From assembly GCA_047495785.1 (NCBI GenBank), contig JBLDXI010000004.1:186001-250000 (forward strand): 64,000 nt of DNA, given 5' to 3'. Made by a program: the position numbers and the translations under genes. Source of the stretch: Lepidodermella squamata (Eukaryota; Animalia; Gastrotricha). Below the pieces are notes generated by a model, which saw only the letters and a program-made list of their open reading frames with translations, had not been told where the DNA came from and did no database searches. Positions 50 through 63,897 of this stretch are shown piece after piece. The stretch's first letter is position 1, and each line of letters starts with the position of its first letter.

Positions 50-1949
50 CTGAGCTATCAAGCAATCGGCATAGTTGCTAGCAAAGTCTGATTTCGCCCT
101 GAAAATCAGTACCTGAAATAGAGAAAACGGCAATTACGCGATAATCAGACTGCTATATCAGAGAAAGCACCCTTCAAATTGAAATAGACAATTTTTCCCA
201 CTTGAACCTCCCAACTGAATGCTCCCCCTAGCACCTTGAGCATAGCCTACCTCTGTCATAGGAGACGGGCAGGAGTTGCGGCAAACCAAGTTGCCAGACG
301 ACGAGCATATGGCCGCAGGCTGCGATATATCCAAAATAAATTCGAAAAATAGCGTTTACGAACAATCCAACTAACGCCGGCGGTACAGCGATATCTGTCG
401 ATGTAGGTTCCGCTGCTGTAGGACTAGATAGTCGGAAATGAGGAATCAGGGAATGCATTTGAATTACTAAATTTAATCAACCTGAGTCATTGTTGCCGGA
501 TCGCAAGGCGTTGATTTACAACCGACGAAGGACCGGTCGCTTTGGAGGAAGCATCGATTGAATGGCACGAAGTCGGCATTGTTGCGGATAACTGATAATA
601 TAGAAAAAAATTGCTGAACCTGGCGGAAGATACTGATAGTTGGCGAAAACACGAAATCTTCAAATTATTGAGATGAATCCAACCAATTTTATTCCGACTA
701 GGTTCAGCTCTGAGGGGGTTAAATCGAGCATTTTGAGACCTAAATCAACAGGGGGACCCTTTCGTTTTTCAACAAATTTCGAATGACAAGGGGGTTTGTT
801 TACCCCATTACCCCCGTACTCGGACCACTGCCATAGGCTGTTGGTGAGAAGAATGAACAAACTCTTTTCCTGGGCCAAGCACATTTGCAATGTGTCGTAT
901 TTGCCGACTGGAGTCTGAATTGGAGAAACAGAGAATCTTGGATTCAACTATCCACATCAGTCGGATTAACGCTCACCGCGCCATCTGGGCATAGGCCGTT
1001 GACCGGGATACACGTTCGCTGACCGTTTTTGTCACAGGCTGTCGCCTGAACGTTCTGTAAATAAGTGAAAAAACGGGAGAACATTAAACTTAAGAGTTAA
1101 ATCGATTGATTTTTGATTGAAGATATGCCTAAATTTCAGCCAAATTTAGAAATTGGGGGATTCTCATAGGGACCAAAGTTAGTGGATTTCACAATATAAA
1201 ACCCGTTTCTATCATCAGTTATACAGTGATTACATTGATTTCTCTGCTGTATTTCATCGTTTGTGGCGCGTGCCAAATAGTGTGGTAAATATTCATTCAT
1301 AATTTTAGAAATTGGCGTTGGCGTAATTTTCAAAATATTCAAATACTGCGTATTTTACAGAGCAAAGCATCGCAGGTAGGAAGTGCTAGTGTCACATTTT
1401 AAGTATTTCTTCAGCTATTTTACAAAAGCGTACCAGGAAATTTTTGATCGTAGATCGGCATACATCGTACTGCGATCCGAAAACGTCTCCGAGAAATTCC
1501 GCAGTCTGTTTCGGAGAATGGGATGATAAGTTTCAATTGCACGTGAAATCCCAGGCACGAACCATAACTTCTTCATTTTTGTCACAGCCGAGGTTACGCG
1601 GGATGCATCGCATGTTGATCGTTTTGTAGTTGAAACAGCTTCGAGCGGCCTTACATCGAAAAGGAGAGATGACAAATTAAAACAGGAATGGATTAACTCA
1701 CACCGGCTTTGCAGCTCGCTAGCGAAGGTAATTGGAGTCCGAGCTTTATCAAATGCAGAAATCCGATTAAAAAATGTTAATTAAAGTTAGAAACAATGAA
1801 CTTGCCTGAACTTCATCCAGGAACGAACAGTTCTGTTTACAACCTGTGAAAGCGTCATTCAAACGGGAGAAACATCGCTTGTACTCTTGTTGATAGGCTA
1901 ACGAAGTTAGGCTTAGGATGAGAAGGGTGCGAAACATTTCGGCCATCAT
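50..1949 (-). CDS. Gene A: secreted four-Cys-module protein, 10 exons visible, 3' end runs off the window start; recent paralog of gene C
   Basis: Exon 1 (1949-1806) is MMAEMFRTLLILSLTSLAYQQEYKRCFSRLNDAFTGCKQNCSFLDEVQ (signal peptide plus module 1). Later spliced exons include LGLQLPSLASCKAG, AARSCFNYKTINMRCIPRNLGCDKNEEVM, NVQATACDKNGQRTCIPVNGLCPDGA, ..NRCFLQSDRSFVGCKSTPCDPATMTQ, PAAICSSSGNLVCRNSCPSPMTE and VLIFRAKSDFASNYADCLIAQ (112-50). They join in frame via GT/GC-AG and are collinear with gene C. Confidence 0.85.
692..830. mobile_element. 5'-truncated copy of the 154-bp hAT-type MITE at 53979-54132, in an intron of gene A
   Basis: TCCGACTAGGTTCAGCTCTGAGGGGG...CCCCGTACTCGGACCACTG matches the 53979 copy; absent from the homologous intron of gene C. 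Confidence 0.75.
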
Positions 1950-2018
1950 TTTAAATATATATTTTAAAAGAGAAAATAATGAATAAAATTTTACGTTGAC
2001 CTCTTTTTTCAAATTGAA

Positions 2019-2025
2019 GCACGCG
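2019..2025. promoter_or_regulatory. GCACGCG/GCACGTG motif upstream of family genes (example: gene A)
   Basis: Same core motif at 3800, 12683, 16616, 16908, 36958, 38144/38188, 51737, 61129 and 63309/63355, each 65-185 bp from a family ATG (or the relic exon). Confidence 0.55.
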
Positions 2026-2118
2026 TTGTTTTCATGCTATTTTGATTTTCAAAAAAACATCTGGCACATTCAACACGCCTGAGTATTATTTTCATCCACA
2101 CCCTTTGAAAATAACATG

Positions 2119-2455
2119 GATTGAATCAAGGACAACAATCCAAGACATAAATTTGAAATTCATTTTTTGTATTTCATTCATTTGTGATATCTGCGATCGA
2201 CTATTGAATTTTCTGCGATTTTACATTTTAATTAATATGGTTCATAGTCAATAGACAGGGAGACACCAGAGGATTTTCTAACCTACTGATTGAATCAAGG
2301 ACAACAATAAATTTGAAATTCATTTTTTTTATTTCATTTATTTGTGATATCTGCGATCGACTATGGAATTTTCTGCGATTTTTAATTGTAATTAATATGG
2401 TCAATAGTCAATAGACAGGGAGACACCAGAGGATTTTCTAGAGCTGAACCTACTG
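2119..2455. repeat. ~170-bp tandem duplication upstream of gene A
   Basis: GATTGAATCAAGGACAACAAT...AGACAGGGAGACACCAGAGGATTTTCTA occurs twice here and once in the paralogous region near 12783-12950. Confidence 0.85.
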
Positions 2456-2594
2456 CTCGACGAAATCCTTGATGGGCTAATCGAGCTGCGTGACAAAATT
2501 CGACGCTTGTACTATTTAATTTTAATAATACTTCAATTAATTTTATGGAAAAGTGATATTTTAGGTATTTAATTTTTAATGAATCAGAATATCT

Positions 2595-3902: not shown

Positions 3903-6501
3903 ATGAAATTGCTTGTCATCATTTTGGCTGGGCTGATCGTTACCACCGAAATTGTGCAATGCGGCGAGTGGGCGCGTTGTTTCTCGCAGTTTGATGACTC
4001 ATTCACTGATTGCCGTCAAGTTCCAGATGGTTGCGTAAAGTTGCGGGAGTATCAAGTAATTTCCAAAACTTTACTTTTCATTACTGTAACAAGCTTTTTG
4101 CCTCCCAGGTTGGTGACAAAATAGCTGATCAAAGTTCATGTTTGAAAGCGGTTTGTTCTTTCTACTGTAGTTATTATTCATGTTCAATAACTTCTCCTTA
4201 ACAGACCGCAAGGTTGTGTTACAGATTTTCTACCAACGCAGCCACATGTCGACCCGGCATTCCAGGATGTGGAAAAACAAACGAAATCCTAGTGAGTTAT
4301 CACCAGCGTTCGAAACTAAATTGAATAATTTTTTATTTGTTCATGAATTTTGTTCCGCATTTAATTGCTCTGGTTGGCAAATTTGTCGAAAATTCTGATA
4401 ATTGAAACCACTAAAAATCAATAAATCAATAGGAATTCATAATTGTTTCTAAACATTTTCGAAAATACTGAAAACTACACAAAACTTTTCTACATATTTA
4501 GGTATGCAGTTAAGGTTAAGAAGTGAAGCTCTCATAAGAGGTTCGCAATTTTTCCTTTCTCATCTTTTAGGAGCGATGGCTCGCAATTTGAGCCCGGGAA
4601 ACACCGCGGTTAAGAAAGAGTTGGTTTAAAAAAAAAGTCGACAATTTTATGCATAATTAGTTGTTAATTGTAATAACCTTACCATATGTATAGATTTTTA
4701 ACCTTTATTTTTTTTATTAAATTTGAACTGGAATCATAAAAGAAACATCGTATGACTAGTTCTTAAATAACGGCTGTGGGGTTTGTTATTCGCAGTTAAC
4801 TTCGCCAGTGTGATGCAAAAACAAAAATACGTATTCATAAAAAATCTGGCAGTTTGAATGTGACCATAATGATGATTCTCCATATTTCCAGGTTGGCGGG
4901 GCTTATAATGGAGCGTTTCCATTTAGAGCCAATCTGGGAGCCTGCATTAAAGACTACAACTCGTTTCCGGTTAGTTTTTTTTATCAAAACGCCAATATCA
5001 ATCCAAGGTAATTATTTGTTTACAGAATCGAAAATTCGATTCGTGCTTTGATTCATCTTGGCAGTTTCTCACATGTGTTCCTAGCGAGTTTTCGTGTCCG
5101 AGTGGGGTAATAAATGTTTCTGTTGAAAATTTCGATCACCATCGGTATATCAATCGATTCAGGGTAAGTATGCCACGGGCTTCTCAAATTTGGACGCCTG
5201 CCTTCGAAATAATACCGGCAAGTTCTAGGTTTTTATTCTCGAGACGTTGTTTTTACAATCGAATTCATGCAATTTTCAGCTGATGCTGCTGACTCAATCA
5301 AGCCGCACATCCGTTGCTTCAACGCTGCCACGCTTGAATTCACCGGCTGCAGGTTGAGCAGCCGAGGCTGCGGAACCGATGAAACTGCTGAATTTTCAAC
5401 TGGCGTCTACAGGAGCAAAGCGAACTGCTTGTCATGGGTAAGCTAAATTTCAATAGAACATGTGATCCAATCACATTCTGCGATAGTATGCTGTCCAGTG
5501 CGATACGCCCAACGGCAAGAAATGTTACAATACTTGTCCGGCTGGTTCAACCGCGGTTAGCGAACTATGTTCCATCGAAACTGTTCTAGAAATTGTGTTT
5601 TTAGGTTACCATTTATGCCAACTCGACGAAATTCGCTGATAACCATGCAGCCTGTTTGAAAGACTCGAAGCCGCCATCTAGGTTCTTTCTCTCACCGCTT
5701 GATGGGGGCGTATTCCGGCAACAATACAAGGCCTGCAAGAATGCTAACGGCCGCCTGGCTGTGTTTGCGTCGTTAGCTGAGGTCGCTGAAGCCGCGGCCT
5801 TGCTCACGGACCTTGAGTTCCCCTACGTCGGGCTGGTCGCTGATTTCACTTGGGAAGATGGCAGTCTTGTTGACATGAACTCGCTGTTCTGGCAAGAAAC
5901 TAGTCCTGGTGGATCAGGCGAATGTGAGGCGATCAAACACTATTTAAAAGGATTGTTGACCGAGACTCTGCTTAAATAGGTATGATTTTGTCTGCCGATG
6001 GCTTTATGGATTCCACCTGCCCAGGCTCAGGCACTTACGGCCTTTGCTCCAACAATGTGAGTGAGCCTTAACCTCGCAACTGCCGTTAATAAGATCTTTT
6101 TAGACACTGGATAGCTTGGAAATCTCGACGGTGGCAGGCTCTTGGGACTCGCTTTCGAACTATTGCGTATCAAAAGGCAAGAGGTTGGCTGTAATCAAGG
6201 AAGAAGCGACGTTCGAGAAAGCAAAATCACTGCTACCAGCGGGTTCTCAGGCTTTCATCGGGGCGAAGCGGAGGAGTGATAAGCTGGACAACCTGTCATG
6301 GATAACTGGCAATCCATTCAACAGAACGGCCTTCGACTTTACTGACGAGATTGACCCGGGAAACCACTGTATGGATAGTTATAACCTATTCAAAATTGAC
6401 ATTGACGATTGAATTATTTCTTAGGCGTGGTGTTGATTAGGGGCTACCTAGCAGCAGGCTATTGCCTTGGCAATGGATATGGCTTATGCGAGAAAATCTG
6501 A
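3903..6501 (+). CDS. Gene B: secreted protein with 5 four-Cys modules and two C-type lectin domains (12 exons, apparently intact)
   Basis: Exons 3903-4055, 4109-4150, 4205-4291, 4892-4969, 5026-5106, 5163-5217, 5280-5437, 5487-5555, then from 5605 on. CTLD1 is ACKNANGRLAVF..YVGL..WEDGS..ECMIL..C..GLCS. CTLD2 is YCVSKGKRLAVI..FIGAK..W..HCVVL..YC..GLCEKI*, with TGA at 6499-6501. Confidence 0.88.
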
Positions 6502-9388: not shown

Positions 9389-9474
9389 CGCAGAAATTCG
9401 ACTATTTAGCTCAAGCACAATGTTATTTATCCTCACTTTGATATCATCTCAAAACTAGCTTGCCGCACAAAATC

Positions 9475-12400
9475 TTACAAAACCGTCTCGCACAAAACGT
9501 TGTTTTTATCAAGCGCGCAGGTAACAGATAAGAAGTAAAAATTGTCCACGTAAAAATGGAACGCAGCGCAGCCATCAAATCTTGTCTTGGGCACCCATTG
9601 CGATTGTAGCCATTGGCTCGGGAAGCTGGAACCATCATCCCATTTAGGCACTCCGCTTTGCCTGGTCAGACCAAGCCAGTAAGTGGTAATATTTCGTGAA
9701 TTAGGATTCACCAGTTTCCTAGCGAGAGCCAGCTCAGCGTCCGTCCTTATCGTAGCTATTGTTGCATTGTTAGCCAGGCATGCCGCTACCGCCGCATCTT
9801 TTCCGTTCAACGCCGCCTGAAGCTTCAAGTACTTCTTGGTTGCGTTCTTACAGCTGTTCTCGTCCGGATACGCGATATTAGCCGGAATTCGCAGCTGAGA
9901 CGTCGCATTGCAGCCTGTCGTCTCCTTCACGCAATTAACCGCCGCGTTACTGTTGTCGACGCAGCGGATAAACGAAGACTACAAATTATAAATGTTCTAA
10001 TTTTGAATTTTGGTTTATAAGGATGGGTGTGATCGAAAGATAAACCGTAGCTAACTATAAGTTTAACTAGTAGTTAGGCTCCCACATACAAAAGTTCATA
10101 GTTAACTTATAGTTAGCAACGGTTTATCTTTCGATCACACCCATCTATGTGTCACTTTTCGAGAAAAATAGCAATCTCCCTAAACTTTGGACTTCAAGCT
10201 CAAGTCCCGAGCTTTTCGACTGAAAAACAGCTGGAAAAGCCCAGTTAATTTTCTCAAGAAAGAAAATGAAAAATGCTTTTGAATTCGCATAATATCTCAT
10301 AGCTTGGACATATGGAATTTTGGAATTTGAAATAATAAAAGGCCACGAGTGGCAGCCGCTCGTAATATTTCGAATTTATGCTAGCATCGCCAAGGGCCAA
10401 GTATTGAGAACCTCAGGGCCAATAAGACAGCTAAAATCTTTAGAGATCACGCTGTGGGACGCATCTTATTCGTGAAATCGATGGGAAAGCCCACGATTGC
10501 GGCGATATGGAAATAGTACGAAAATTTATATACCTGAGCTATCAAGCAATCGGCGTAGTTGCTGGCAAAGTCTGATTTCGCCCTGAAAATAAGTACCTGA
10601 AAAATAGAAACCACTAATTACGTGATAATCAGACTACTAAAGAAAAGCCCCTTTCAAATTCAAGGCTATAATTTTTCCCAGTTGAACCTCCCAACTGGTT
10701 GCATCCTCCCCATAGCTCCTTGATTTATCTTAGGCTTAGCCTACCTCTGTCATAGGAGATGGGCACGAGTTGCGGCAAACCAAGTTGCCAGACGACGAGC
10801 ATATGGCTGCAGGCTGCGTTTTATATATCCAAAATAAATTCGACAAATAGCGTTTACGAACAATCAAACTAACGCCGGCGGAACAGCGAAATCTGTCGAT
10901 GTAGGTTCCGCTGCTGTAGGACTGGATAGACGGAAATGAGGAACATTTGACTTCAAATTTATCGGAATTTATTAACCTGAGTCATTGTGGCCGGATCGCA
11001 CGGTGTTGATTTGCAGCCGATAAAGGACCGATCGCTTAGGAGAAAGCATCGATTGAAGGGCACGAAATCGGCATTGTTGCGGATAACTGAAAAGATAAAA
11101 AGTGTTTGATCATCAGTAAGCATGGCTCAAGCAGAGATTGTTTTTTATTGAAATGTAACAAGTATGATCGATATCCGCATTCGATTTTCAAATCGTTAAC
11201 TGTTGAGGTTGAAATGAACCATGAAACAAACTCTTTTCCTGGGCCAAGCACATTTGCAATGTGTCGTATTTGCCGACTGGAGTCTGAATTGGAGAAACAG
11301 AGAATCTTGGATTCAACCATTTACATTACTCGGATTGACGCTCACCGCGCCATCTGGGCATGGGCCGTTGACCGGGATACACGTTCGCTGACCGTTTTTG
11401 TCACAGGCAGTCGCCTGAACATTCTGGAAAATTGAAAAATCACTAGAATGTGGATGACCATTTGTTACGCCGGCAAATGCCTATTCTCAACTCTCAACCC
11501 TGAACTGTGATAACTTCAAATGAGCGAGCGAGAAGAGCTTCACAGAACCGTCATCAAGAAAGATGATATTTCAAAATCGCAGATATTTTCCAGCCCCCTA
11601 AATTTCACACAAAAGAATTCGATATCGACGAAAATCACTCGGTAAATTCCTGCTCGCTAAAATATAATAATTTAAAATAAAAAAATGTGTCGGGTCCAGT
11701 CTTGCAAATTTTTATTAAAACTGCAATGCAGAAATTCTTCAACTATGTATTTTCCAAAAGCGTACCAAATTTAGAAATTGGGGGATTCTCATAGGGCCCT
11801 AAGTTAGTGGATTTCACAATATAAAACCCGTTTTTCTCATCAGTTATACAGTGATTACATTGACTTCTTTGGTGTATTTCTTCGTTTATGGCGCGTGCCA
11901 AATAGTGTGGTAAATATTGATTCATAATTTCAGAAATTGGCGTGACGTAGCCTATTTTTAAATAAGCAGCCAGTGGAAAATTTACAATAATTTTCAAAAT
12001 ATTCAAATACTGCGTATTTTACAGAGCAAAGCATAGCAGGTAGGAAGCGCTAGTGTCACATTTTAAGTATTTCTTCAGCTATTTTACAAAAGCTTACCAG
12101 GAAATTTTTGATCGTAGATCGGCATACATCGTACTGCGATCCGAAAACGTCTCCGAGAAATTCCGCAGTCTGTTTCGGAGAATGGGATGATAAGTTTCAA
12201 TTGCACGTGAAATCCCAGGCACGAACCATAACTTCTTCATTTTTGTCACAGCCGAGGTTACGCGGGATGCATCGCATGTTGATCGTTTTGTAGTTGAAAC
12301 AGCTTCGAGCGGCCTTACATCGAAAAGGAGAGATGACAAATTAAAAATGGAATGGATTAACTCACACCGGCTTTGCAGCTCGCTACCGAAGGTAATTGGA

Positions 12401-12613
12401 GTCCGAGCTTTATCAAATGCAGAAATCCGATTAAAAAATGTTAATTAAAGTTAGAAACAATGAACTTGCCTGAACTTCATCCAGGAACGAACAGTTCTGT
12501 GTACAACCTGTGAAAGCGTCATTCAAACGGGAGAAACATCGCTTGTACTCTTGTTGATAGGCTAACGAAGTTAGGCTTAGGATGAGAAGGGTGCGAAAAA
12601 TTTCGGCCATCAT
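9475..12613 (-). CDS. Gene C: secreted protein with 6 four-Cys modules and one C-type lectin domain (11 exons, apparently intact)
   Basis: Exon 1 is 12613-12470 (GC donor); exons 2-10 are as in gene A. The last exon (9978-9475) is SSFIRCVDN..CVKETTGC..ENSC followed by a CTLD (ACLANNATIATI..YWLGL..WDDGS..GCAAF..VTC..VLCETVL*). Confidence 0.88.
10022..10145. mobile_element. Short palindromic MITE in the last intron of gene C
   Basis: GATGGGTGTGATCGAAAGATAAACCG ... CGGTTTATCTTTCGATCACACCCATC. Confidence 0.75.
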
Positions 12614-14800: not shown

Positions 14801-16543
14801 TCAGGGATACCTTTGGCATAGTACTTTTCGAACTGCGTATCGGCAAGGCATTATGCCGAAGTAGAAACCAGGGGCTGGGACGTTTGTGCTGGTTGTGTAG
14901 AGGATGATACCGCAGGCATCGAATGTACCAATTTGACCGTACCATTTTGATGCATCAAATATGAAATCGGAGCCATCGTCCCATTTGTATAGGCCTTGTT
15001 TCCGAGTGAAACCGATCCAATGCAATGCAGCCTTATCCATCGTTTGTGCGGCAGCGGCCACATCAGCGTCAGTCTTGAGCATGGCCAACGTTGCGTTGTA
15101 TTCGGCGCATTTTGCGATGCGTTCAGATTGATCGTTATTAAGCTGGACTTCAAATGCCAAGTACTTGTCCCCCTGTGTTATGTTATTGCCGTAGATATAC
15201 AAAAGTGAAAGCGTGAAAGCGAACTCACTGGAGATGACAAATTGTTGATGCATTTATCATGATTGAGCTGAAAGGTCGGCGAGTCGGAAAACATCTTATC
15301 CTTGTTACATAGAAATACACTTCATACCAGGGAGAGATATATTCCAGGTCCCTACCTGAGTTTGATCTTGAGGGCAGGCGGCATAGCACGACGTTCGATT
15401 TGAGGAATCCCTGCATGACACAGCATTCTGTTAAGAAATTGTTAGTAGGTGCATAAGCTTCGAAATTGGCTTGACAGCTCACTCCTATCAAGCAAGTTGA
15501 TCTGTTGATGTAAACTTTGGCCGAGTACTGCTGAGTCTCATTGCTCGCATAGCAGCCGGGGCTTTGCGGTCGGCAGTCACTGAATTTGCCAGCTGTCGAA
15601 TCGAAACACCGGATTTGCGGCTTCTCACTGATCGGAACAGTGACTGGAAACGGGAAAAACGCCAGGTTAGACATTCATTTCATTTGGGTTACTAACCGGA
15701 ATTGTTGATGCAAGACGCTAAATTTGAGTACAGCGTTTGCTCAGTGACCTGTGTGGGCATAGCAAAAGTAAAGATTGCACAAAATTACGAAAAGATTACG
15801 AAAGAACGAAAGAATTACGAAAGAATTTCCAACCATTTGAAACTAACCCAGTTTTCGGGGCAAGTGTACGGGTCTGGAACACAAGTTTTAATCGTGCCGC
15901 TAGAAGTGCATCGCCGGAATTGCAATTCCTGGAATGAAAAAACAACCAAGTACCAAGAATTCCGAGGTAGTTAAACATTTCTCACGTCGAAAGCAGCTCG
16001 CTGCTTCTCACACTCGTTGAGGTTGTATTTCAAGCTCAAAGCCGGCGTCTGATCGTCGAACCAGAGGGTCTGAAAGTTAATTGTTTTCTATTTGAATCTG
16101 CCGGAGATATCACGAGAAAGATGAGGCGTACATTCATATCACCCGGATTGTTACAACCGACGTTACCAGGAACGCAAAACGGGGTGAGAGCCTCGTATTT
16201 GTAGCACATTCGGGCATTCTACAGACAAAAGAAGCGCACTTGAAGCAAAACTCATGAGCAGGTAATAAACGGACTCCTTTGTTGCAGACTCCTGTGGTTC
16301 GGGAAACTGAGCCCCACTACAAGTGAAAAGATTCAGTTGAGAACAGATTTCATATCGAATCGAATAACGGCAAACCTGAAATTCTTTGAGTGGATCACAG
16401 CCATCGGCAGCCGGAAGGCAGCTGGTGAATCGGTTGCTGAACTGTGAGAAGCACCGAACCCAGTTCAACTGCTGCTTGCCCCAAGCCACGTCGCTCGATG
16501 CCATCAGAAGCGCCAGTAGCATGGCTTCATAAATATTAGTCAT
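14801..16543 (-). CDS. Gene D: secreted protein with 5 four-Cys modules and one C-type lectin domain (10 exons, apparently intact)
   Basis: Exons: MTNIYEAMLLALLMASSDVAWG..WVRCFSQFSNRFTSCLPAADGCDPLKEFQ | WGSVSRTTGVCNKG | NARMCYKYEALTPFCVPGNVGCNNPGDMN | TLWF..NECEKQRAAFD | ELQFRRC..TCVPDPYTCPENW | ..ASCINNS | ..PQIRCFDSTAGKFSDC..GC..STCLIG | NAVSC..SCYAACPQDQTQ | ..HDKC.. | CTLD (KCAEYNATLAML..HWIGF..WDDGS..DACG..MPC..VLCQRYP*). Confidence 0.9.
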
Positions 16544-17112: not shown

Positions 17113-17531
17113 AATAATAATGCGAATAAATTCAATCATTATTGAAATTCATGCTGATCAGGTGTTTTATTGATACTAAAACAGAAATATTCGAATAGCC
17201 AACATCTTTGCCTAAAAGATTGGTTGAAATGTGAATTTTGAGTCAGTTTAAAGAGCAGGCGATCAACTAGCAACGCGTTCAACTAAATGCGATAAACAAG
17301 TATATCAAGGCTAAAAAGCTAACTTGATTTCATGTCTTAAAATTCTTCTGAATCCATCAGTTTTCGAATGACGGCGGACAGCTGCAGACGACTTATTCCA
17401 ACATTAAGATAACTGGAAACATATTATCACATTTTATTGACAACTCATCCGCTACAACTGGGCCGGCCAGGGCTAGTCACCGGTCACCGGATGAGTTGAT
17501 GACGAATTTCGATTGTTCAACAATGGCAAAA

Positions 17532-40739: not shown

Positions 40740-41399
40740 CTGCAAGAGCTTATTCTTCGATACATTGGTTCAACTCTATGACCGATTATGTTTTTTTTCT
40801 TTCACGTATTCAAATCGGGAGAACTTGAGAAAATCGAAATGAAACGCAGTTTACCTAATAAATATTAATTTCATTGACCTTCTCGTGGTTGAAGGTGATT
40901 TAGCAGCGGGTTCATTATTCCGGCACAGCAGAAATACTCGAAGTTGCGATGAAAACGGGAGAGCCTATGAGGTGGCTTTTTCCGAGCTCTGATCCAATTC
41001 CGACGGCGATTATGCTAACATCTGTATAGGGTTCTCGCTTGTAAATCAAACGATTATGCAAATCAAACGAACGTAATCAACGTAAGGAAACCTATAATCG
41101 ATAATTGATGAGGTGCACTCCTGACTTATTCCTTATTCCATCGAACATTTAAAAAAAAGTTAAGGTTGTCACCACCCAATCGGAAACTGAGATTAAATAA
41201 AACGTTGAATTTTCTGGTTGTTTTGTTGAAAATATGAAAATGATATAATCCGTTGGTTCCGACGTTTCCAACTCAAAATGGTTAAATGGTTCGAGAAAAG
41301 AAAATGAAAGTTCGAAGGTTTCGTTTTACTCCAGTTAGGCAAGACTGATGTGAAATGCGATGTAACCACCATGATATTTTATTGTTAAAAACAACAAAA

Positions 41400-48100: not shown

Positions 48101-51100
48101 CATTACGCCCTCGAAACTTGGATGGATATGACTACTTGAAAGCGTTTCAAAATTATTAAAACAAGCTTATTGTTGAGAGTTTGAACTGTGTTTTACTCGA
48201 GCTGTCTAAGAACGATTCAGTCCATGAGTTTCTGAAACGTTTCCTCCATGATTATCTCGGAATTCCCAGCGCAGATACCTCAGAATGACCGCAGTATCGA
48301 AGATATTTGTTGGTCATTATTTGTCCAGTACATATATTTTTTTCACACAGAATACAATGGGCTATATCTTACTACATGTGTGCGTAGTACTATTTATAGT
48401 GCGTAGTACTCTGGATAGGAATTTTTTCATTGGCTCCTTATAGCGCAAAATCATCGATATCGCGAAATTCTAGTTCCTTTTGGTAGCATAAGGCATTTAA
48501 AGCAAGGGGCAATTTGCTGACCCTAACACTTTCGAGCTTATTATCGGAAATTAGAGATTGACGGGAGAAATTCACAACAAGATTCGTAGTAAATGTTAGC
48601 CAACCATTGATGCACTCGCTGAAAGTCGTGAAGTCGATGCCGGTGGAGAATTCGGAAGTCTAGTGAAGAGAGTAGCAAATCATAGGTCATACTCCAGAAT
48701 TCAGATGGCTAGCTCACCGAAGCAGCCGAGCAATCTTCAAATGTTTTTACGCAAGTGACCAAATTGAAGCTGCTGGAATCCAAGCACTGTTTGTACCGAA
48801 TCTGTGAACATAATCAAATATGGCACTTCAGTCTTAATGAATCATAGGTGGCATACCGATGGATTGACAGATGCTGCATAGCTCTGACATGCTGAGTAGG
48901 CGGTCGCGAAAGATGATGGCGCTGCTTGAAAGACCTTTACCTTTATTCAAGGAATGAAAAGCAAGAAAACTCAGAGAACTAAAACATTCATCCAGATGAG
49001 TCACATTTTAAATTAATGAGGACGAGCAATGAGGACGGGGGGGGGGGGCAGCTGGCAACTGTCTAAGAGGAAGTGCCCCACCAGCAGAAGCGCCTCCGAA
49101 AACCGGGGCCATGGACTCGCGGTGAATAAAAAGAAAATGCTATATTATCCTGTATTCACTATAGACGAAAAACTGCAATACCTTCACATTTTCCCTAATT
49201 TTATGAATAATTTCTTTATTTATGCTATGGCTATCCGATTTCATGAATTGAAATATACTTTAATTGGCTTAAATCATTTTTACTGCATCTAATTATATTT
49301 TTTCCACATATAAATCTTGTTTTCGCATCTAGGCATTTTTTCTACAGCTAATTCTACTTTTTCTCACATCTAATTTAAAATTAGCCGAAATGACTTCAAA
49401 CAAATTGAAAAATGATTCAGCGCGTTTTTCTTGACAAGAAAATATATGTTTCTTTCCCAGATCTGGCGCGTGGAATAACGCAGGTGGAGAAATGTTCATA
49501 AAATGTTGCAATCATAATCATGAACTACTGAACCCGCACAAGTTGCGGACAAGAGTCAACACCGGAGCCACTAAGTTGACAAAAAATTAAGCAATCCGAG
49601 ATTCAACGCGTTAACAAGTCATTCAACCTCATTAACAATGGAAAACATTATATGGCTCTGGTCCGATGAATTTATCCTGCGATATTTATCGATTTTTATA
49701 TAAATACAAAATTTGCCGTCAAACGTTATTATTATCACACTTTTGCTAAACACGTACGTGATTTTTTACGCAAACACAAGTAACGGTAGCTTCGACGCCG
49801 CTGCGTCCTGATACGTCTCATGATTTTTTAATAAAATTAAAGCAGCCATACCAAGTTCCAACCGCTTGGGCATCTGTTCCTACATTGAACATGGCCATTT
49901 TTCCGACACGCTGCTGCATTCTGAGAATAAAGACATCTTCTTAGGGAGAACTGATCGAAATCAATGGAAATGGTCATGGAAATTAATGAAGAGTCTTGAA
50001 ACTTGAGGTCGAATGGTTTAAGACCCGCAAGTCATACCCATTTCTCGCAATGCATACGATCGATGTAAGGCCGGGGGCTGAACGACTGGATGAAAATGAG
50101 CGGAATGACAATGAATAGCTGAATCGTTTATAGCAGATTTACCGATGTTTCATTCGCAGCTTCTGAACAGCCAATAGATGTCGGGCGACAGCCTAGAAAA
50201 GACCCAGTTGTTTTGAGAAAACAGCGTACATGTGGTTCGAAATCGACAGGGCGCGATTCTGACATTATAAAAAAATTCACTGTGAATGGCAGATGGATGA
50301 TTTGTTTTCAACTTACGATAGCCTTCTGCGCACTTGGACAGCGTTTTGTAAGTCCCATATGGCACCTTAGAGATAACATTTGAAATAATCTGCCGATAGC
50401 ATAATTAATACGTCTACTCACCGTGCCGATGGGACATTTCAGATCCGACGGCATGCAGGCAGCATAATTCGAACCATTGTAGCAACGCTGATAGGTCAAA
50501 CCCTACGTAAAAAAGGCTAGATGCGGAATAACAACCTTCACGCTCGATCTTTACCGATCTCGTCGAATTCTCGCAATCGGACAGGCTATTACGCAGCAAG
50601 TCGAACCCTCGGAATCGCGCAATCTGATATCAGGTGATATTAATCGGGAGAAAGTATTATCAATACAATATGATCACCTCTAGAGACTTCGCTGGACAAG
50701 AAATATCGCCTGGTAAGCAACGCAGTGTCAACGTTTCCGGATTGTAGCAGCTGTGAGCAGTCTGACGGGTGAATATCAAACAAACGGTAAATCGAACCTA
50801 TTCTTTGTTCGAGATTCATACCCCATAGGTGCACAGCGTTCTGTTTGCGTAAATCTTGCCAGAGAACTGAAAGACGCACAAAGAATATTACGAGGCAAAC
50901 GAATTGTGGCAGCAAAATGTAGAGCCCGTGTGTATGTGTGTGTGCGCGCGACTCTAAGGGTAAAGGGGGCTTTGCGGTATTTTCAGCCCCGAATTAAGAG
51001 TGCGCGAAGTAGGATCCTCCAACTATGGGGTATTTTCAAGCAAATTTTATGACCAAAGGGTCCCCCTGTGGTCTTTTTGCGGGTTTCCACATTGACCCTC

Positions 51101-51624
51101 TGAACTAGGGGAAGAGGAGGGTCGCCAGCAAAATTGAAATAGGACTTTCCGAACTGAAGATTTGGAGTGCGCTTTCTAACGGCAAATTGGTTCTTGAATT
51201 GGGTTTTGTGAGGGTAAAGTAAAAAATTAGGCGCCAAAACAACTGTTGGGCGCCAAAAACAGAATTGGGAATTTATGAACTATGACAAATGAAACAACTC
51301 AGTGCCGTTATCAAATTCGTGATTTTAAGTACATTATGGGGCATACATATTGAGGCGATTTTATTTCTACGCAGCGCAGTCATTCCGACGATTACGATTA
51401 TCACTTATCTTATTGGGAAAATTGGGTGATAAGTCAATAAACATCTGCCATACCATATAGTTTTCGAGAACATCACATCCGACGCGAGATCGGCGGCAAA
51501 TCTGGTCGAAAGAATCGTCGAATTGCGAGAAACATCGAACCCATGCGGCAGTAGCTGGCGTCACTATGAGGCAGATGATGAAGAAGACGCCGCTAGTTGA
51601 AGCAAACAGCCTGGTGTTGCACAT
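42190..51624 (-). CDS. Gene G: secreted protein made only of 12 four-Cys modules (23 exons, apparently intact); paralog of E
   Basis: Exon 1 peptide is identical to E. All exons join in frame to KTLDTPVPMYASYKKCVDDDLSGSF* (stop 42192-42190). A ~4-kb transposon lies in the intron between ~48605 and ~44500. Confidence 0.85.
44530..48570 (+). mobile_element. ~4-kb DNA transposon (Sola1-like) antisense within an intron of gene G; ends approximate
   Basis: The homologous intron in gene E is only ~85 bp. Inverted subterminal motif ATATCGATG.TTTTGCGCTA (~44650) / TAGCGCAAAATCATCGATAT (~48440); central transposase. Confidence 0.7.
46206..48100 (+). CDS. DDD-type transposase (Sola1-like), ~630 aa, split by one frameshift near 47215
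   Basis: Motifs CGCWRKC, VCRSFFL, DQRGRH, SHYAR, PKKDTCKKC, FDMQSIL..P, NLTFYD, WDQTEGGRG..EVGSCL, WSDSTGSQNK, FFEPGHSQMECDSVHATIE. Confidence 0.8.
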
Positions 51625-54132: not shown

Positions 54133-54185
54133 CATAGTTCAATAAGATGTAAATATAAGAGTCAGTATATTCGCTGGCTATTGGT

Positions 54186-55392
54186 TTAGCGCATGCCTGG
54201 TACGGCGAAAACGGCGCAATTGATTTCGACAATTCGCTGCTGGCCGAAAGTGAGAACTTGGGTGAACAGGTTCAAGCAAGACAAACTCCCAAACAGGTTA
54301 TCTTGCGGATCCGCCCAGGACCTAGGCAAAGAATAATGAAGAATTACATTACGACATTAGCCGCAAAATTAGCTGAAACCTACCGCCCTAGAATGAACTG
54401 ACCCATTTTCGTTATAGGCCGCGAACCATTCCCAACCAAGCCACCGATCCTGTCGGCATAAAAACTTAGCTTATCGCCATCCGCATCGAGCGTGATTGCT
54501 AGAAACTGCCACGGAGAATCCGTTGTGCAGCCCAGACCGGCACGAGCAATTTTGGCTCATTCGAACAACTCCGAACAATTCGATTTGACCCCTTTGTTCG
54601 CCTGTTTTTGAGAATTTTCCAGCCGAACAACTCCGAACAAATCCTAAAATAGACGAACAGGCTCAAAAACAGGCGAACAAAGGGGTCAAATCGAATTGTT
54701 CGGAGTTGTTCGAATGAGCCAAAATTGCTCGTGCCGGTCTGGGAGGGGATTGAAATTGCGTTTTGGCCGTACGGCCGAATGCTAAAGGATTTGTTATCGG
54801 CCCCTGATAAGACCTTAAGCCCAAGCGTCGTTTCGTCTGGAGCGAATTCGAGTAACGGCTTTGCGAAGGCAACATTGACAAAAAATGCGATAGTGAAACT
54901 TCCGTTGTCCAGCTTAACTTTCTCAGCAGCTACAACAATAGGATCAGTTGTGCTAAAAAAGAAGGATGTGCTCGACACGTTGAAAGGCCCAGCTCTACGC
55001 AGCAGGCCCTTATTCGGAGGCGTTGCATTGGCTTTAGGATCTACGACATCATTGAAGTCGGACACTAACGGCCAAATAGCTATGTTTGAAGGCAGAAGGG
55101 TTGCCAGGGCTTCGGGAAGCCAGGTTTTGCCAGCATGAATTTGCAGGCACCTTTTCCTTACAATCCACAGCTGTTCGCCCAACAGAGCATGATCAAATAT
55201 TGACAGACACGTAATTTGTCCCGGAAGACGACTGGTGTCGGCGAGATTGCCACCAACCCTCATTTTATTGCTCGTTGTTATCGAATATACAAATTGAGTT
55301 AGCGCCCGGTCACAATATACCTTCGATTGCTTGGATGTTCCATCGTAAATAAGCGCGATAAATACCCATGACTGAGATGTCCCAGTTACTGC
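54186..55392 (-). pseudogene. H': 5'-truncated duplicate of the LamG-coding 3' end of gene H, disrupted by a MITE
   Basis: SWVFIALIYDG..LPGQITCLSIFDHALL..IWPLV..FTIAFFV plus a last exon ending AVPGMR* align with 56631-57620; 3' flank ~53795-54185 matches ~56335-56630. Confidence 0.85.
54531..54743. mobile_element. Palindromic MITE with CCC...GGG ends (CMC-like), inserted in the H' coding exon
   Basis: ~85-bp inverted arms starting CCCAGACCGGCACGAGCAATTTTGG; 2-bp TSD AG; absent from gene H. Confidence 0.85.
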
Positions 55393-56630: not shown

Positions 56631-59600
56631 TTATCGCATGCCTGGTACAGATAAAGCGGCGCAGTTGATTTCGATGACTCGCTGCTGGCCGAAAGTGAGA
56701 ACTTGGTTGAACATGTTCAAGCAAAATAAACTTCCATACAGGTCCTCCAGCGGATCAGCCCACGACCTAGCCAAGCAAATATGAACTATGATTACATATT
56801 TAGCTGCATACTCAGCTGAAACCTACCGCCCCAACATGAACTGTCCGCTTTTCGTGACGGGTCGCGAGCCATTCCCAACCAAGCCACCAATCCTGTCGGC
56901 ATAAAAACTCAGCTTATCACCGTCCGCATCCAGCGTGATTGCTAGAAACTTCCACTGAGACTCCGTTGAGCTGGTGATTGAAATTGTATCCTGGCCGTAA
57001 GGCCGAAGGCCATAAGAACTTTTAGAGTTCACTGTGACCTTAAGCCCAAGTGTTGTTTCGTCCGGAGCGAATTCGAGTATTGTCTTTGCGAGGGCAAGAG
57101 AATTGACAAAAAATGCGATAGTGAAACTCCCGTTGTCCAGCTTAACCTTGTCAGCAGCTACAGAAATGGGGTCACCTGAGCTGAAGAAGAAGGCTGAGTT
57201 TGTTACGTTGAAAGGCCCAGCAATACGTCCCATAGTCCTATTTGGAGGCGTTGCATCGGCCCTGGGATCGACGACATCATTGAAGTTATACACCAACGGC
57301 CAAATAGCTATGTTTGAAGGCAGAAGAGTGGAAAGGGCTTCGGGAAGCCAAGTTTTTCCAGCATGAATTTGCAAGCATCTTTTCCTTGCAATCCACAGAT
57401 GTTGGGTCAACAGAGCTTGATCAAATATCGACAGACACGTTATTTGGCCCGGAAGACGACTGGTGTCGGCGAGATTGCCACCAACTTTCATTTTACTGCT
57501 CGTTTTTATCGAATATGCCGCTGCATTGAGCACCCGGTCGCAATATATCCTCAATATCTTGGATTTTCCGGCGTAAGTTATCGCGATAAATACCCATGAT
57601 TGAAATGGCCCAGTTACTGCATTGCATTTGGGCGATGCAACTATAGCATCATTACCTGTACAGTTTTCGAATGAAAGTGGCATATGATCAGAATAAAAAT
57701 CAGAAAATTTACCGAAGTTTGTTCCCATGACGTTGGTCGCAGGGTTGTAGGATATTTGTAATAGCGCTGTATTTTCGTAGAACTCAAATATTGGAAAGGA
57801 CGCATTTGGGAAATCCACGAATCCAACATAAGCAGAGATCGTAAATGAATTGTTGAGAGCAGCGTCGAAAACGAGCTTGCTACTCGCCACCTCTAAATAA
57901 CCGGTTGACATGCCGACCGAAAGGGCTGCGTTAGGATAATCGAAAGGTCCAGTGACGAACGAGGGCGAGGTGCCGCCAGTGAAAGCAGCGCTCATTTTAT
58001 TCGCACTGATATCGTTGATGCCGTATTCCTGCGTGAGGGGGAAGAAAGCCAGGTCTTGGGGTAAGCCGAAAGGCGTCTCTATGATAGGGAAAAGTTCGCT
58101 TTCAGATAAACCGAACGAGCACGTAAACGTACGGTAATTGCACATTTCCAAAGTGTCATACGTAGTATTACTGGATTGCACCTAAGTATATTATATTTTA
58201 TATTTAAATATATTTTGTGATAAAATAAATGGTTTGAAAAGCGGTTGAGCTCACCGAATTTTGCGGGCAGTTTTCCACCACAGGTACGCAAGTCGCCGCC
58301 ATCAGAAGCTGATTAGTGCATAGTTTGTACTATAACATGAAAATAATTAGCTGAAAATAAGCGCAAATGCATTCATAGACTGAGGAAGGAAAGAAATGTT
58401 AATAAATTCGGAAACCCCAATTTTAGGAAGATGCAGTGCTGGTGTTACGACCACATCGGTATGTTGGGTTCTAAACCGAGAACAAAAGACGCGTTAAAAT
58501 CGCAGGGAGGGCTGGTAGCTGTCAAACGCAGTAGGGCTCTGGCTCATGAGGGCGTGAGAGCTTGAGCACGACTGATGAGTGGCGTGAGCATACATTGTTA
58601 CGGTTTCGAAAACATAGCTGTTCAAAATAAATTGTTGTTGGTGAAGAAAACTAAACTTCAGTCAACGAATGGACTACGGCGATCAAAATGACGACGGACA
58701 CCTGTGCGGTTCGTGCACTGCCTGGAAGAAGCCTTGATGGACCCCGCTGCCGCCACTGCGACTGCGAGTATGAATCCCTCTCACATGTCCTTGGTTTCTG
58801 CCCTCGCGGTGCTCTGCTTCGCAACGCCCGCCATCATAGAGTGCGAACTATGATCGCAGACTCCTTGCGTAAGAACAAGACCCTTGAAGTCTACGAGGAA
58901 GTTTCCTGCCTCGCAAAAAATGACGGCCTCAAAAGGGTCGACATTATCGCCTTCAATAAAAACACGAGAGAAGGGTGGATCTTGGACCCTACCATCCGCT
59001 TCGAAAAAAGCCCAGATCAAGCCCTGGAAGTCGACAAAGAAAAACGGGCACACTACGAGCCTTGCGCAGAATACTTCAAGGAAAGATACAATCTAACTTC
59101 CCTCGAAGTAATCGGTCTCTTTGTTGGAGCCCGTGGTACCATCACCAAGTTCTTCCGCGACTTCGCAAAACGTCTCGAACTACCGCAGTCACTCATGTGC
59201 GACATCGTCATTTCAACGATAAAAGACTCATGCAAAATCATAAATAATCATTTGTACGGAAAGAATTAGTTAAATGTAAATACCCGCGTCTATAGGCAAA
59301 CTGTTACTTAGTATCAGTTGTTTTAACAATAAACTACTACCCCCACCACTGGGAATTCAATAATAGACATTTCAATAGGTTTTTGGAAATGTTCGAGAAT
59401 CCTTTTAAGGTAGGTTTCGAAGCAAGTCATAGCGGCCAAATCAAATTAATTTGAGAACAACGCAGCAGATTTGACGAAGCATTCAAGAATGTTTGCCACG
59501 CTTTGTCATCTTCATGCCGTGAAATAACGAACCTTGATGGAGAGACAGTCAGCGTAGTTTTTGCCAAAATCAGTCGAGGCTCTGAAGGTTGAAACCTAAA

Positions 59601-61016
59601 CCATAAAATAAGCATTCAACATTTTTTGTTTGTAATATCGAGCATATATTTGGTTAAATTGCGATTTGTAAAAGATTCTCATTTTTTTTTAGGAGAAATC
59701 ATTATTTCATGAAGCTTCTCCATGTCAAAAATGAACTTGTCCCCATTCATAAATTTACGCTCGCTAAAAATAGCAGCACGAGTTTTTTAAAAATCACGGT
59801 TAAGTTTCATTGAAAAAATGGAAACAATTCTTCAAAAAAACTTGAAAAAAGTTCGATGGCAGGAAAAGACGAAGATCTAACCAAAGTAAGCGGCGACGGG
59901 CAGGAATTTCGGCAAATCGGACCGTTGGCAGATGAACACAAGGCTGCTGGCTACAAATTAAAAAAAAATAAACAGTACGAGATAGAGAAAAGTCATCATT
60001 TTCTCACGCCGGCAATACAGTAAGCCTTGTTCATGAATGGACCGCTGCTGAATTCCTGTGTGATACAACAATTAAAATTTTGGCAAAAGAAATCAAACAT
60101 CCAATTACTGGTGTCAGGCTGGTGTCGGTGCATTGCGTAGATCGACAGCCAACAAAAGTCCGATTGCTCTTCGCAAAACACCGGTAATTCACCACAAAAT
60201 CGGCAGTGTTGCGAATGACTTGAAATTATTCAATTTTAATACTCAGAAAAATGACCTAGGTTGTGTTGGACTTACTTCCTTGTTGATCCAAGCAATCTTG
60301 CATCGTCGGAAAAGTTGTGACAACGGTCTAAAATTAATTTAGTATGAAAATGAGTGGAACAAATAAAAAATTATGCTTAATTCACCCCGCTATTCGGACA
60401 CGAGCCAACGCTTGGGATACACGTTTGTTGGCCGTTGCTGCTGCAAAGCGTTGCTGGGCTAGTCTGCTCGTTAAACATTACATCAAAATAATCAGAAATC
60501 GAGGTTATTAGTTGTGAACCATGAATCGCCTGATGTTGTAGCGGCATTCGTCGTAATTTGTTCCGAAATTGGTACCCATGTATTCGGCGATCTAAGGAGA
60601 ACAGATTTCATGGTAATAATAAATATTAAATTCTAGCCCTCACCAGAAATTCATCACTGGTACAGCCCAAGTTGCGGGGTATGCATCGCATGTCGATTGT
60701 CTTGAAATTGAAACAGCTTCGAGCAGACTAAATTAATCACGTATGACTCTCAATTTTCGAATAGAAAAAGCCCCACCCCTTGTTTGCAGGAGGTAAGACT
60801 TGGCAGCTCAAGTCCCAACTGAATTCGAAGTCAAGGTTTGTATGGATAGTTGTAAATTTTCCTTTTGAATGTTACCTGGGTCTCATCCAATGTAGAGCAT
60901 GTTTCTTTGCAGCCGATGAAAGTGTCATTGAAGCGTGAGAAACAGCGCTTATAATTCGCGGCTAGCGAAGCTGCCACGGAATAGAGAAAAATGACCAAGA
61001 AAAACAAAAGCCTCAT
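56631..61016 (-). CDS. Gene H: secreted protein with 6 four-Cys modules and two LamG/pentraxin-like (concanavalin-A fold) domains (~13 exons)
   Basis: MRLLFFLVIFLYSVAASLAANYKRCFSRFNDTFIGCKETCSTLDETQ | LGLELPSLTSCKQG | SARSCFNFKTIDMRCIPRNLGC.. | .. | VSTFRASTDFGKNYADCLSIK | YKLCTNQ..TCVPVVENCPQNS. A large exon (58181-56827) has two FTI(S/A)xxV..FEF..W.F.AIT..G repeats and LPGQITCLSIFDQAL. The last exon is ..YGSLFCLNMFNQVL..MR*. Confidence 0.82.
58620..59340 (+). mobile_element. 5'-truncated RLE-clade non-LTR retrotransposon, antisense in an intron of gene H
   Basis: ORF 58688-59269 has the CCHC knuckle CRHC..ESLSHVLGFC, RHHRV, and restriction-like endonuclease motifs RVDII..LDPTIR..KRAHY; short 3' UTR ending AATAAACTACTAC. 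Confidence 0.85.
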
Positions 61017-61623
61017 AATATTTCAGCTAAAAAAGTGTTTCGAAAAATAGTTACCATTGAATAAATTGTGAATGAACAATTTAAATCGCGTAATTTTTTT
61101 CCGGTCTCGAGTGTTTTTTTTAGGTAATCGCGTGCCAAGTTGAATTGGCTAGAAAAACATCTTTTTCACTTTTAATTTTTTTCAATTTTAAATGAGGCTT
61201 TGTTGAATGATTGATTAGTTGAAATAGATTAAAATGCCTAAAAAATCTCATTCTTATCGAAGCTTTCGCTGAATCGAAGTCTGAGCAATTTTGGTGACAC
61301 ACGTCCTAAACTAGAGACTGTCAAAGTCAATAAACCGGCAGCATTACGCTGCCTATTTTTTGAAGCATGAAGCAAAAAGCTGTCTGCTCTGTAATCAAGC
61401 AATGCTGCTCCGATCTGGCATTGACACTCGCGAAAAGCTGTTCTCGAAAAGTTTTCTGAAGAATCACAGGCCAGATTTCCCATTTCGCAAAAAATATTTA
61501 AAGTCGCTAAACCGACGCCAAATCAGGGCAACGGATGTTAACAGTAACAATTATTGAAATGTTTTGATAACATTGAATTTTCGATATCGTTTATCTTATT
61601 TCATTTACAATGGAACTTACCAC

Positions 61624-62584
61624 TAGTGATGCGCGCCGATTATTTTTTCTTTAATCGATTAAAATTCGATTTCCACGATAATCGAATCGTGTTAATCGCG
61701 ATTAAATCGTCAATCGAATCGCCCGACAAATCAAATCGATTAATCGTGGGCGCTGTATTAAATTCAAGTATTGTAACAAATATTTGAACGCGCTTCTAGC
61801 ATTACTATCAACTCGTATCCTCAATCTGACAATTCCACGAGATTCTACGCAAAAAACTGAGTAATTCTATGTGTTACTCGACCTAAATTGGTTTTGGTGA
61901 TGCAAAATAAATTGAGTGCAATAAAGCAATAAATTTATTAATTAGTACTAATTATTTCCGGAAGTATGATGGCTATTGAAATTCTGAAAGCAGATTCTGA
62001 TTCCTCGTGAAAAACTACCCTAAGGCGTTTCTAGGGGGGGTTTCGACATGAAAAGAAGCGGTTTTGCCGATTTCTTTGAGATTTTTATTTTTATAATCCA
62101 ATTAATTGATCAATTCAATAGCCGGAAACCAAATTTTGATTGCGCGATTTCTTCACAACCATTCACCCTGTTTTGATGAAAATTGGGGCTCTAGGATAAC
62201 TTTTTACGCTGAACAAGATGATGCGAACCGTTAATTGATAGAGACGATTGGATGAGCGCAAATCGATAATCGATAATCGATAATCAATCAGTTTCCTGTT
62301 ATGCTTGCAATTTTCAAATAGCGAATAGATTTTTCTTAACAAAGCATCCTCCTCATCGAACAAAATGCTTAGAAAAAAGAATGCAGTAGAAGAAAAATAG
62401 AAATAGGAATGAACGTAAGCAGATTCGCCTCTACACTGTCTTGTCAGAACATCTATCATAGCCGATTAATCGGGCGATTAATTGATGCCAGGAAAGACGA
62501 TTTTTGGACGAGCGCCATGATTTAAATTCGATTCGACTTAATCGTGATTTAATCGCGATTAGCCAAAATCGGAGCGCATCACTA
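61624..62584. mobile_element. Non-autonomous hAT element between the divergent genes H and I
   Basis: TIRs TAGTGATGCGC / GCGCATCACTA; perfect 8-bp TSD CTTACCAC; AATCGATT-type subterminal repeats. Confidence 0.9.
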
Positions 62585-63491
62585 CTTACCACCAAATTTA
62601 GTCGAAATTAAATAAATCAGGCTGAAATCGAACAAATGTTTCGCCCTGTTAGGTTGACTTGTTAGGTTGACCGCCACAAAAAGCCAATATTACTATTTCA
62701 TAACTCGGATACAAATTAAAAGTAATTTATTCAATTTATTTAACAGGCACCAAAGTCTGAGATTATTTTGCCTGAAGCGGAAAGGGCTGGTATTATTCTG
62801 CTTTTATGTTGTTGTGATCATTCGGATTTTTGAGAACAAACTTTAAATTTAAATTTTTTAAATATTTTTTGCGAAAAATAAAACTTGAATGTTGACAAAG
62901 GTCGTAGTGGCGAGTACGCCCATGATTTCGGACACTTAGGTACAATGGCGAATTTGCGCAAATTAAAGCGGCAGTCAACATTTGAGTAAATACCTTTCCG
63001 TTGAAACTAAATAACAACAATGCAGCAAATGATGGTCTAAATTAACGAGGGCCACCATCATATAAAAACGAAGAATTATAAAATTCGGAAAAATAGGATC
63101 TGACCCTGAAATGGACGCCAGGTCGGAAGTATACTCTTTGACACGCGACCATCTGTTGCACAGTTGTTTATCAGGGCTGGGCGCCAAAAAATGAAACCCT
63201 AGTTTTTCACTCGTTACGATTTTTTTCAAATTCACACTGATATTTTTGGATTTTTTCAGCATTATCTTTGCGTTTAAATGATTGTTTATCTCATGGCAAT
63301 AACAACAGCGCGTGCTGTTTTCACATATTTTCAAATGCGTCAGATGGAAGTGAACGCGTGCTTTTGAAAACACTTGAACGCCTGGGCTTGAAATTGACAC
63401 AACGAAATTCACATTTCATACAGTTGTATTTTTCAAATTCAAATAAATTATGGTAAATTGATATATGCTATCATTTTTATTGATAATTAGA

Positions 63492-63897
63492 ATGACTTTA
63501 CCTCAATGCCTTGCTACTGGCGCTTCTGATGCTGGCTTCAATCGATGTTGCTTCAGGCAAGCAGTTGAACTGGGTTCGGTGCTTCTCGCAGCAAAGCAAC
63601 AGATTCACCGCCTGCGTGCCAGCTGCGGATGGATGTGATCCAGTCAAAGAATTTCAGGTTTACCTTTTTCTTTGATATGACATTGCCAGCTTGATATTTT
63701 CACCAACAGTGGGGCCAAATTTTCCGAACCACCGGCGTCTGCAATACTGGGGTCCGTTCATTCATTTTCTCGCATTGTATTGCACTAAGTTTGTTTTGAT
63801 TTCTCTACAGAATGGCCGAATGTGCTACAAATACGCGGCTCTTACTACGTTTTGCGTTCCTGGAAATGTCGGTTGCAACAATCCTGGTGATATGAAT
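63492..63897 (+). CDS. Gene I: close paralog of gene D, first three exons (continues past the window end); start may be frameshifted
   Basis: LLLALLMLASIDVASGKQLNWVRCFSQQSNRFTACVPAADGCDPVKEFQ (to 63657) | WGQIFRTTGVCNTG | NGRMCYKYAALTTFCVPGNVGCNNPGDMN (63811-63897). ATG 63492 is out of frame with the signal peptide. Confidence 0.75.

Follow-up and report, generated by a model that had tools for sequence, protein, structure and literature searches.

Tandem genes of the gastrotrich Lepidodermella squamata combine stalks of a probably undescribed four-cysteine module with differing, exchanged heads

The gastrotrich Lepidodermella squamata carries a tandem array of genes in which a repetitive cysteine-rich stalk is followed by lectin-like heads of differing type or by none, which raises the question of what the stalk is made of and what such proteins may serve for. 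The window analysed is a stretch of 64,000 nt of contig JBLDXI010000004.1 (positions 186,001-250,000, forward strand). An earlier note on this DNA had described nine copies plus relics of a secreted constant scaffold with variable heads. All nine copies (A to I) were located where it had placed them, alongside one relic of a laminin G (LamG) domain, and the proteins indeed share a hydrophobic N-terminus and differ in their heads. The stalks consist of modules of about 45 amino acids, which are ordered in triplets and probably represent an undescribed domain, and the evidence points to at least one exchange of heads. Genes were rebuilt exon by exon, resulting in open frames for A, B, C, D, E, G and H. 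The features, including C-type-lectin-like domains (CTLDs), are:

50..1949, minus strand: copy A, signal peptide and modules 1-5, 10 exons, open frame of 255 amino acids
3903..6501, plus strand: copy B, 486 amino acids, signal peptide, five modules and two CTLDs, 12 exons
5280..5437, plus strand: exon 7 of B, a complete four-cysteine module (module 4) within one exon, AlphaFold confidence (predicted local distance difference test, pLDDT) 86
5605..5923, plus strand: exon 9 of B, fourth cysteine of module 5 and start of CTLD 1 in a single open frame
9475..12613, minus strand: copy C, 422 amino acids, signal peptide, six modules and a CTLD, 11 exons
9978-9475: last exon of C, carrying module 6 and the CTLD
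14801..16543, minus strand: copy D, 396 amino acids, signal peptide, five modules and a CTLD, 10 exons
24820..36825, minus strand: copy E, 647 amino acids, signal peptide and 12 modules, headless, 23 exons
38258..40740, plus strand: copy F, decayed, with signal peptide, module 1, partial module 2, a unit of module-5 type and an end that resembles a CTLD
42190..51624, minus strand: copy G, 645 amino acids, signal peptide and 12 modules, headless, 23 exons
54189..55392, minus strand: relic, a partial duplicate of the second LamG domain and last exon of H, interrupted by an insert
56631..61016, minus strand: copy H, 774 amino acids, signal peptide, six modules and two LamG_3 domains, 13 exons
58181-56827: exon of H with the fourth cysteine of module 6 and both LamG domains
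63511..63897, plus strand: copy I, a D-like paralog of which the window includes the first three exons, start codon uncertain, continuing past the window end

The seven open models contain 95 introns, 92 of them GT-AG and three GC-AG, with a median length of 58 nt; 81 of the 95 are in phase 0, and no model has an internal stop. Copies A and I extend beyond the window edges, so that any head they have lies outside the view. The GC-AG introns lie at 1806 (A), 5217 (B) and 12470 (C), the one of A and C being retained by both duplicates. The G + C content of the window is about 41% and its introns are short; the genome comprises 122 Mb in 157 contigs with 43% G + C (PMC11660948). The motif [RS]C[FY]x6-10Cx3-7C occurs 30 times, compared to a mean of 0.55 and a maximum of 4 in 100 Markov shuffles. 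Together with the open frames, the splice joints found in RNA and ratios of non-synonymous to synonymous substitution rates (dN/dS) below 1, this rules out chance or artefact. Assembly duplication through whole-genome amplification was ruled out for the pairs A/C and E/G by synonymous divergence (dS 0.12 and 0.28) and diverged introns, and the flat DNA depth across B likewise counts against it.

Each of the 51 stalk modules contains exactly four cysteines. The spacing is mostly C-x7-11-C-x3-7-C-x15-23-C, with longer loops in some cases, such as module 8 of E and G. A shared order of modules M1 to M5, with more modules in E and G, had been proposed, which needs correction: stalks comprise 5, 6 or 12 modules, with six in C and H and twelve in E and G, and follow a triplet order. 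The number of cysteines per stalk is a multiple of four, reaching 48 each in E and G. Usually, a three-cysteine exon is followed by a one-cysteine exon, both in phase 0. Phase-1 introns were found within stalks solely after cysteines 12, 24 and 36, where they separate successive a-b-c triplets of modules. The similarity between module positions has a period of 3 (p=0.0015), while periods of 2, 4, 5 and 6 were non-significant. Class a (modules 1, 4, 7 and 10) carries RCF and is joined to the following module by 7 residues; the end of class b is F-x3-Y-x2-C in most cases, and that of class c is [FY]-x-[STND]-x3-C. Profiles built from two classes detected the third, with 15 of 18, 12 of 18 and 11 of 15 modules above the 95th percentile of shuffles in which the cysteines were fixed. 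This mutual recognition above shuffles indicates that a single domain was triplicated into a cassette. It is unlikely that the triplet forms one obligate 12-cysteine domain, for example a beta-trefoil or a prism, because five modules are present in B and D and a module is predicted with confidence to fold on its own.

Module 8 of E (29289-29528) and G (43826-44059) is the most divergent module. It is encoded by a single exon, has a long acidic, Pro/Gly-rich loop between cysteines 3 and 4, and is a candidate binding site in these headless proteins.

The earlier note could not assign the module to a known domain and suggested profile searches as well as AlphaFold and Foldseek runs on single modules. 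With Pfam searches, AlphaFold models of two modules and fold searches, the lack of assignment persists. Searches were run with single exons, and the profile for the large library covered 37 positions, which is part of a module. Pfam gave no match even at E values up to 1. No credible match was obtained among PDB sequences, in which CHCH subunits of complex I, with E values of 0.05 or higher, were rejected as chance matches of Cx10C. Among 1.84 billion representative proteins only two matches were found, both spurious, as they are one-cysteine YxRCF repeats of unrelated proteins with 9-13 aligned residues. A 5.8-billion word index was blank for exon 12 of H, exon 11 of C and the whole-module alignment, and the module was unmatched in Atlas features, viral folds and metagenome contigs; these blanks were obtained with libraries that are poor in small spiralians and lack this animal's own proteins.

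Two single-module models, module 4 of B (pLDDT 86) and module 6 of C (about 90), were predicted with confidence; the CTLD portion of the latter was of low confidence and was left unused. Both models show a beta-hairpin, a short third strand and a helix, and fold searches yielded no significant match for either. MbtH-like proteins ranked at or near the top for both, with Z scores of 4.2-5.3, a range that one of the tools rates as a common arrangement, and an identity of 4-15%. The best pairs had a root mean square deviation of 1.5-1.6 Å over 43 residues; in the Atlas, a template modelling (TM) score of 0.66 was reached. Membership in this family was rejected, as its profile PF03621 was unmatched in Pfam and the match is one of shape only. 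MbtH-like proteins are cytoplasmic accessory proteins of bacterial nonribosomal peptide synthetases, whereas the modules described here are of secreted type and rich in cysteine, so that we speak of resemblance and not of homology. In the wide fold search with a single module, extracellular disulfide domains stayed at Z 2.1 or below. A Kunitz/BPTI origin was considered because of the helix-cap motif and rejected, since the modules have four cysteines instead of six, the TM score in Foldseek is about 0.3 and Kunitz chains are not among the matches listed at Z of at least 2. Kazal and antistasin domains gave no match in the wide searches. Judged by sequence and predicted fold, the module is probably an undescribed domain.

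With regard to the heads, the earlier note listed one CTLD each in C, D and F, two in B and two LamG/pentraxin-like domains in H. The CTLDs of B, C and D and the LamG domains of H were recovered; the pentraxin label was not upheld, and F has a broken, CTLD-like end. C (4e-9) and D (4e-5) match the Pfam family Lectin_C above the cut-off, and B shows two Lectin_C matches on part exons that fall under the curated cut-off. In all three copies the head agrees with the CTLD profile, including the WIGL-type strand and four core cysteines. H matches the Laminin_G_3 profile in two stretches (5e-11), and its Atlas features score 0.97 to LamG_3 clusters. Its head is regarded as LamG_3 rather than pentraxin, because the pentraxin signature HxCxS/TW is absent; a Pentaxin match was also lacking at E values up to 0.1. 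Copy F is broken, with a non-GT donor after exon 2, a CTLD-like end split across two frames and middle exons that were not recovered. Its pieces have no Pfam match, and its head is called by eye only. E and G had been described as ending in more modules; their count is indeed twelve, and neither bears a head.

Stalk and head belong to one protein, as had been claimed. A single exon carries both the fourth cysteine of the last module and the start of the head in B, C and H, and in C this exon includes the entire sixth module together with the CTLD. The RNA joints of B agree with this. Contigs of the probable RNA run, 38 of which match at an identity of at least 99%, cover both stalk and head exons of B, with no depth at all in its flanks or its long intron. 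GT-AG joints were found at 4055>4109, 4969>5026, 5437>5487 (the contig here being that of a paralog) and, in two runs, 6368>6425. Gene B is transcribed and spliced. The contig of a paralog, 2,092 nt in length, matches exons 4 and 8 of B at a distance of 291 nt, compared to 294 nt in the spliced model, and continues for about 1.6 kb beyond module 5, leaving space for a long head. Whole-animal RNA contains several paralogs, and the DNA run has dozens of paralog pieces with less than 90% identity, which indicates that the family reaches well beyond the window.

Comparison of the copies provides additional information on their history. Copy A is a recent duplicate of C (97% identity, dN/dS 0.11), and G is a paralog of E with 84% identity and the same stop position. 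The stalk dN/dS is 0.15 for C/H; for E/G it is 0.13 in modules 1-6 and 0.42 in modules 7-12. The stalks are under purifying selection, and this includes the headless genes. Stalk identity is 32-37% across subfamilies and 57% between C, which has a CTLD, and H, which has LamG domains. In the tree built from the stalks, C and H group as sisters with a support of 98/95, and a constraint that groups the CTLD-headed genes was rejected by the approximately unbiased (AU) test (p=0.027, based on six rows with long branches). These sister stalks bear different heads, which points to at least one head exchange. The recent duplicates A/C, D/I and E/G, the decayed copy, the relic and the transposons in introns are characteristic of birth and death of genes.

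In the history that results, a small four-cysteine domain was triplicated early into the a-b-c cassette and cassettes were subsequently stacked, giving 6 or 12 modules, or 5 after the loss of one. The last exon, which bears the head, was exchanged or lost, with the cluster turning over by duplication and decay. We propose a family specific to the gastrotrich lineage, whose members would be soluble rods held by disulfide bonds. The stalk may act as a disulfide-stabilised spacer or multimerising scaffold that keeps a binding head at a distance from a surface. Secretion may take place at the gut lining, in the pharynx or into the body-surface mucus of this bacteria-eating animal, where the heads could bind or clump bacteria through non-canonical, calcium-independent contacts; the headless E and G would then act via the modules themselves. 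By analogy with clec proteins of Caenorhabditis elegans, a role in secretions that meet microbes is the reading we place first, if just short of calling it probable. The clec family comprises 283 CTLD genes, members of which bind bacteria or affect feeding (PMC8051790). The likeness lies in diverse CTLD proteins of a small bacteria-eating animal; the difference is that the stalk defines the family described here, with the CTLD as one optional head. In clec proteins, partner domains are CUB, CW, VWA and similar ones.

The N-terminus is hydrophobic in every protein and a membrane segment is absent further on, in line with secreted-type, soluble proteins; this call was made from hydrophobicity and not with a signal-peptide predictor. 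Several observations weigh against the microbe-facing role. The motifs EPN, QPD and WND, which are tied to calcium-dependent sugar binding (PMC5842395), are absent from all four CTLDs, as are close variants. The CTLDs are lectin-like folds rather than demonstrated calcium-dependent C-type lectins, and the earlier view of the heads as working lectins is not upheld. E and G are intact without any head. The measurable pairs, with dN/dS of 0.11-0.42, show no sign of positive selection. Among the RNA contigs listed none spans all of B from stalk to head, so that the proposed confirmation by RNA extends to its exons and splice joints.

The strongest rival is a structural or adhesive secretion, such as cuticle, scales, eggshell or duo-gland glue, in which the cysteine-rich modules would be cohesive and the heads would cross-link glycoproteins; we consider it somewhat unlikely. 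It would accommodate the purifying selection on headless 12-module genes, the non-canonical CTLDs and the occurrence of several paralogs in whole-animal RNA. In flatworms, the sister group of gastrotrichs, the adhesive protein Mlig-ap1 has a C-type lectin domain and 11% cysteine in its domain region (PMC6410801). Like Mlig-ap1 and sea-star Sfp1, the proteins described here are secreted, cysteine-rich and lectin-domain-bearing. However, Mlig-ap1 and Sfp1 are giant proteins with vWD, C8 and EGF domains, Mlig-ap1 additionally having TIL domains and Lys/Arg tracts. None of the gene models contains vWD, C8, TIL or EGF domains, Lys/Arg-rich and low-complexity tracts are absent, and charge is balanced. 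One glue is also less easily reconciled with so many paralogs of medium size that arise and decay rapidly.

Another reading is that the module belongs, in diverged form, to a described domain family with poor coverage in the libraries, which would make the gene family an ordinary one; we consider this distinctly unlikely. Databases hold few sequences of small spiralians, the animal's own proteins were not found in them and the 37-position profile covered part of the module, all of which would favour such a relationship. However, Pfam without a match up to E 1, the PDB sequences without any and the lack of a disulfide domain above Z 2.1 speak against it.

The design can further be compared to mollusc VIgL proteins (FREPs, CREPs and GREPs), which are secreted and combine a constant N-terminal scaffold with differing lectin-type heads, including C-type lectin (PMC5433772). 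Constant scaffold and variable head are common to both, and B, C and D have a C-terminal C-type-lectin head, unlike E, G and H. The VIgL scaffold consists of one or two immunoglobulin (Ig) folds, whereas 5-12 small four-cysteine alpha/beta modules are found here; the stalks gave no Pfam match to an Ig domain, and the modules fold as hairpin, strand and helix. In contrast to VIgL proteins, fibrinogen and galectin heads are missing and headless members exist. Since VIgL proteins are defined by Ig folds (PMC5433772), the proteins described here are not members. That an undescribed extracellular domain serves as a gastrotrich chassis, with triplets whose CTLD or LamG_3 heads are swapped by the last exon, forming an Ig-free counterpart of FREPs and CREPs that arose independently, appears doubtful to us.

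Immune recognition of the FREP or CREP type with actively diversified heads is quite improbable, even if the constant scaffold, at least three kinds of head, the head swap and the gain and loss of tandem genes in a region full of transposons are in line with it. The stalk is not an Ig fold, dN/dS is well below 1, and the contigs of B, assembled from RNA of unchallenged animals, are at least 99% identical to the genome with no hint of somatic variation, bearing in mind that contigs drop rare variants. Amphioxus VCBPs are secreted scaffold-plus-binding-domain proteins at a microbe-exposed surface. They carry V-type Ig and chitin-binding domains, neither of which occurs here. The proposed analogy to FREPs or VCBPs as a diversified recognition system is not supported in the form given, the stalk dN/dS being 0.11-0.42 with no sign of positive selection.

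Kazal, Kunitz and antistasin are inhibitor domains repeated in tandem. A module that is itself active, for instance as a tandem disulfide protease inhibitor localised by its head, is very improbable. Its size, alpha/beta fold and [FY]x[STND]xxxC helix cap recall Kunitz domains, and the headless genes are intact, but the Kunitz comparison reached a TM of about 0.3 with none among the matches listed at Z of at least 2, nor was Kazal or antistasin matched in the wide searches.

Secreted proteins of gastrotrichs are almost unstudied. The literature searched contained no paper describing a four-cysteine-module family or gastrotrich immune molecules, and the genome paper makes no mention of lectins (PMC11660948). 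The design is familiar from other invertebrates, in which lineage-specific cysteine-rich repeats with lectin heads are common, and will not surprise specialists; the module is apparently new to described domains. The locus provides a probable new domain, a clear case of exon-level head swapping and concrete candidate proteins that may serve gastrotrichs in gut defence or as mucus, cuticle or glue.

Traces of mobile elements are distributed over the window. Intron 12 of G contains an element of about 3.8 kb (44648-48460) with 23-nt terminal inverted repeats (91%), whose open reading frames (ORFs) of 345 and 300 amino acids in overlapping frames (46206-48100) resemble a split DDE transposase and have no Pfam match. 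In intron 10 of H, a 193-amino-acid ORF (58688-59269), also without Pfam match, has a CCHC finger and a restriction-like endonuclease motif and by eye looks like the 3' end of an R2/NeSL-type retrotransposon without long terminal repeats. Near the H relic, short coiled-coil-like ORFs are repeated at 55864-56184 (no Pfam match) and 53512-53820 and are probably part of a mobile element. The region between D and E (17300-22400) is probably a decayed cargo-carrying DNA transposon, with spliced fragments of other genes, Pro/Ala/Thr-rich and Lys-rich, on the minus strand (17600-19750) and transposase-like sequence with a CxxC motif and a 247-amino-acid ORF at 21236 on the plus strand (20340-22300). 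A dispersed repeat, probably a non-autonomous transposon, is present in at least three copies with 80-85% identity (7964-8275, 22877-23564 and 32616-33300), one of which lies inside the 4.5-kb first intron of E.

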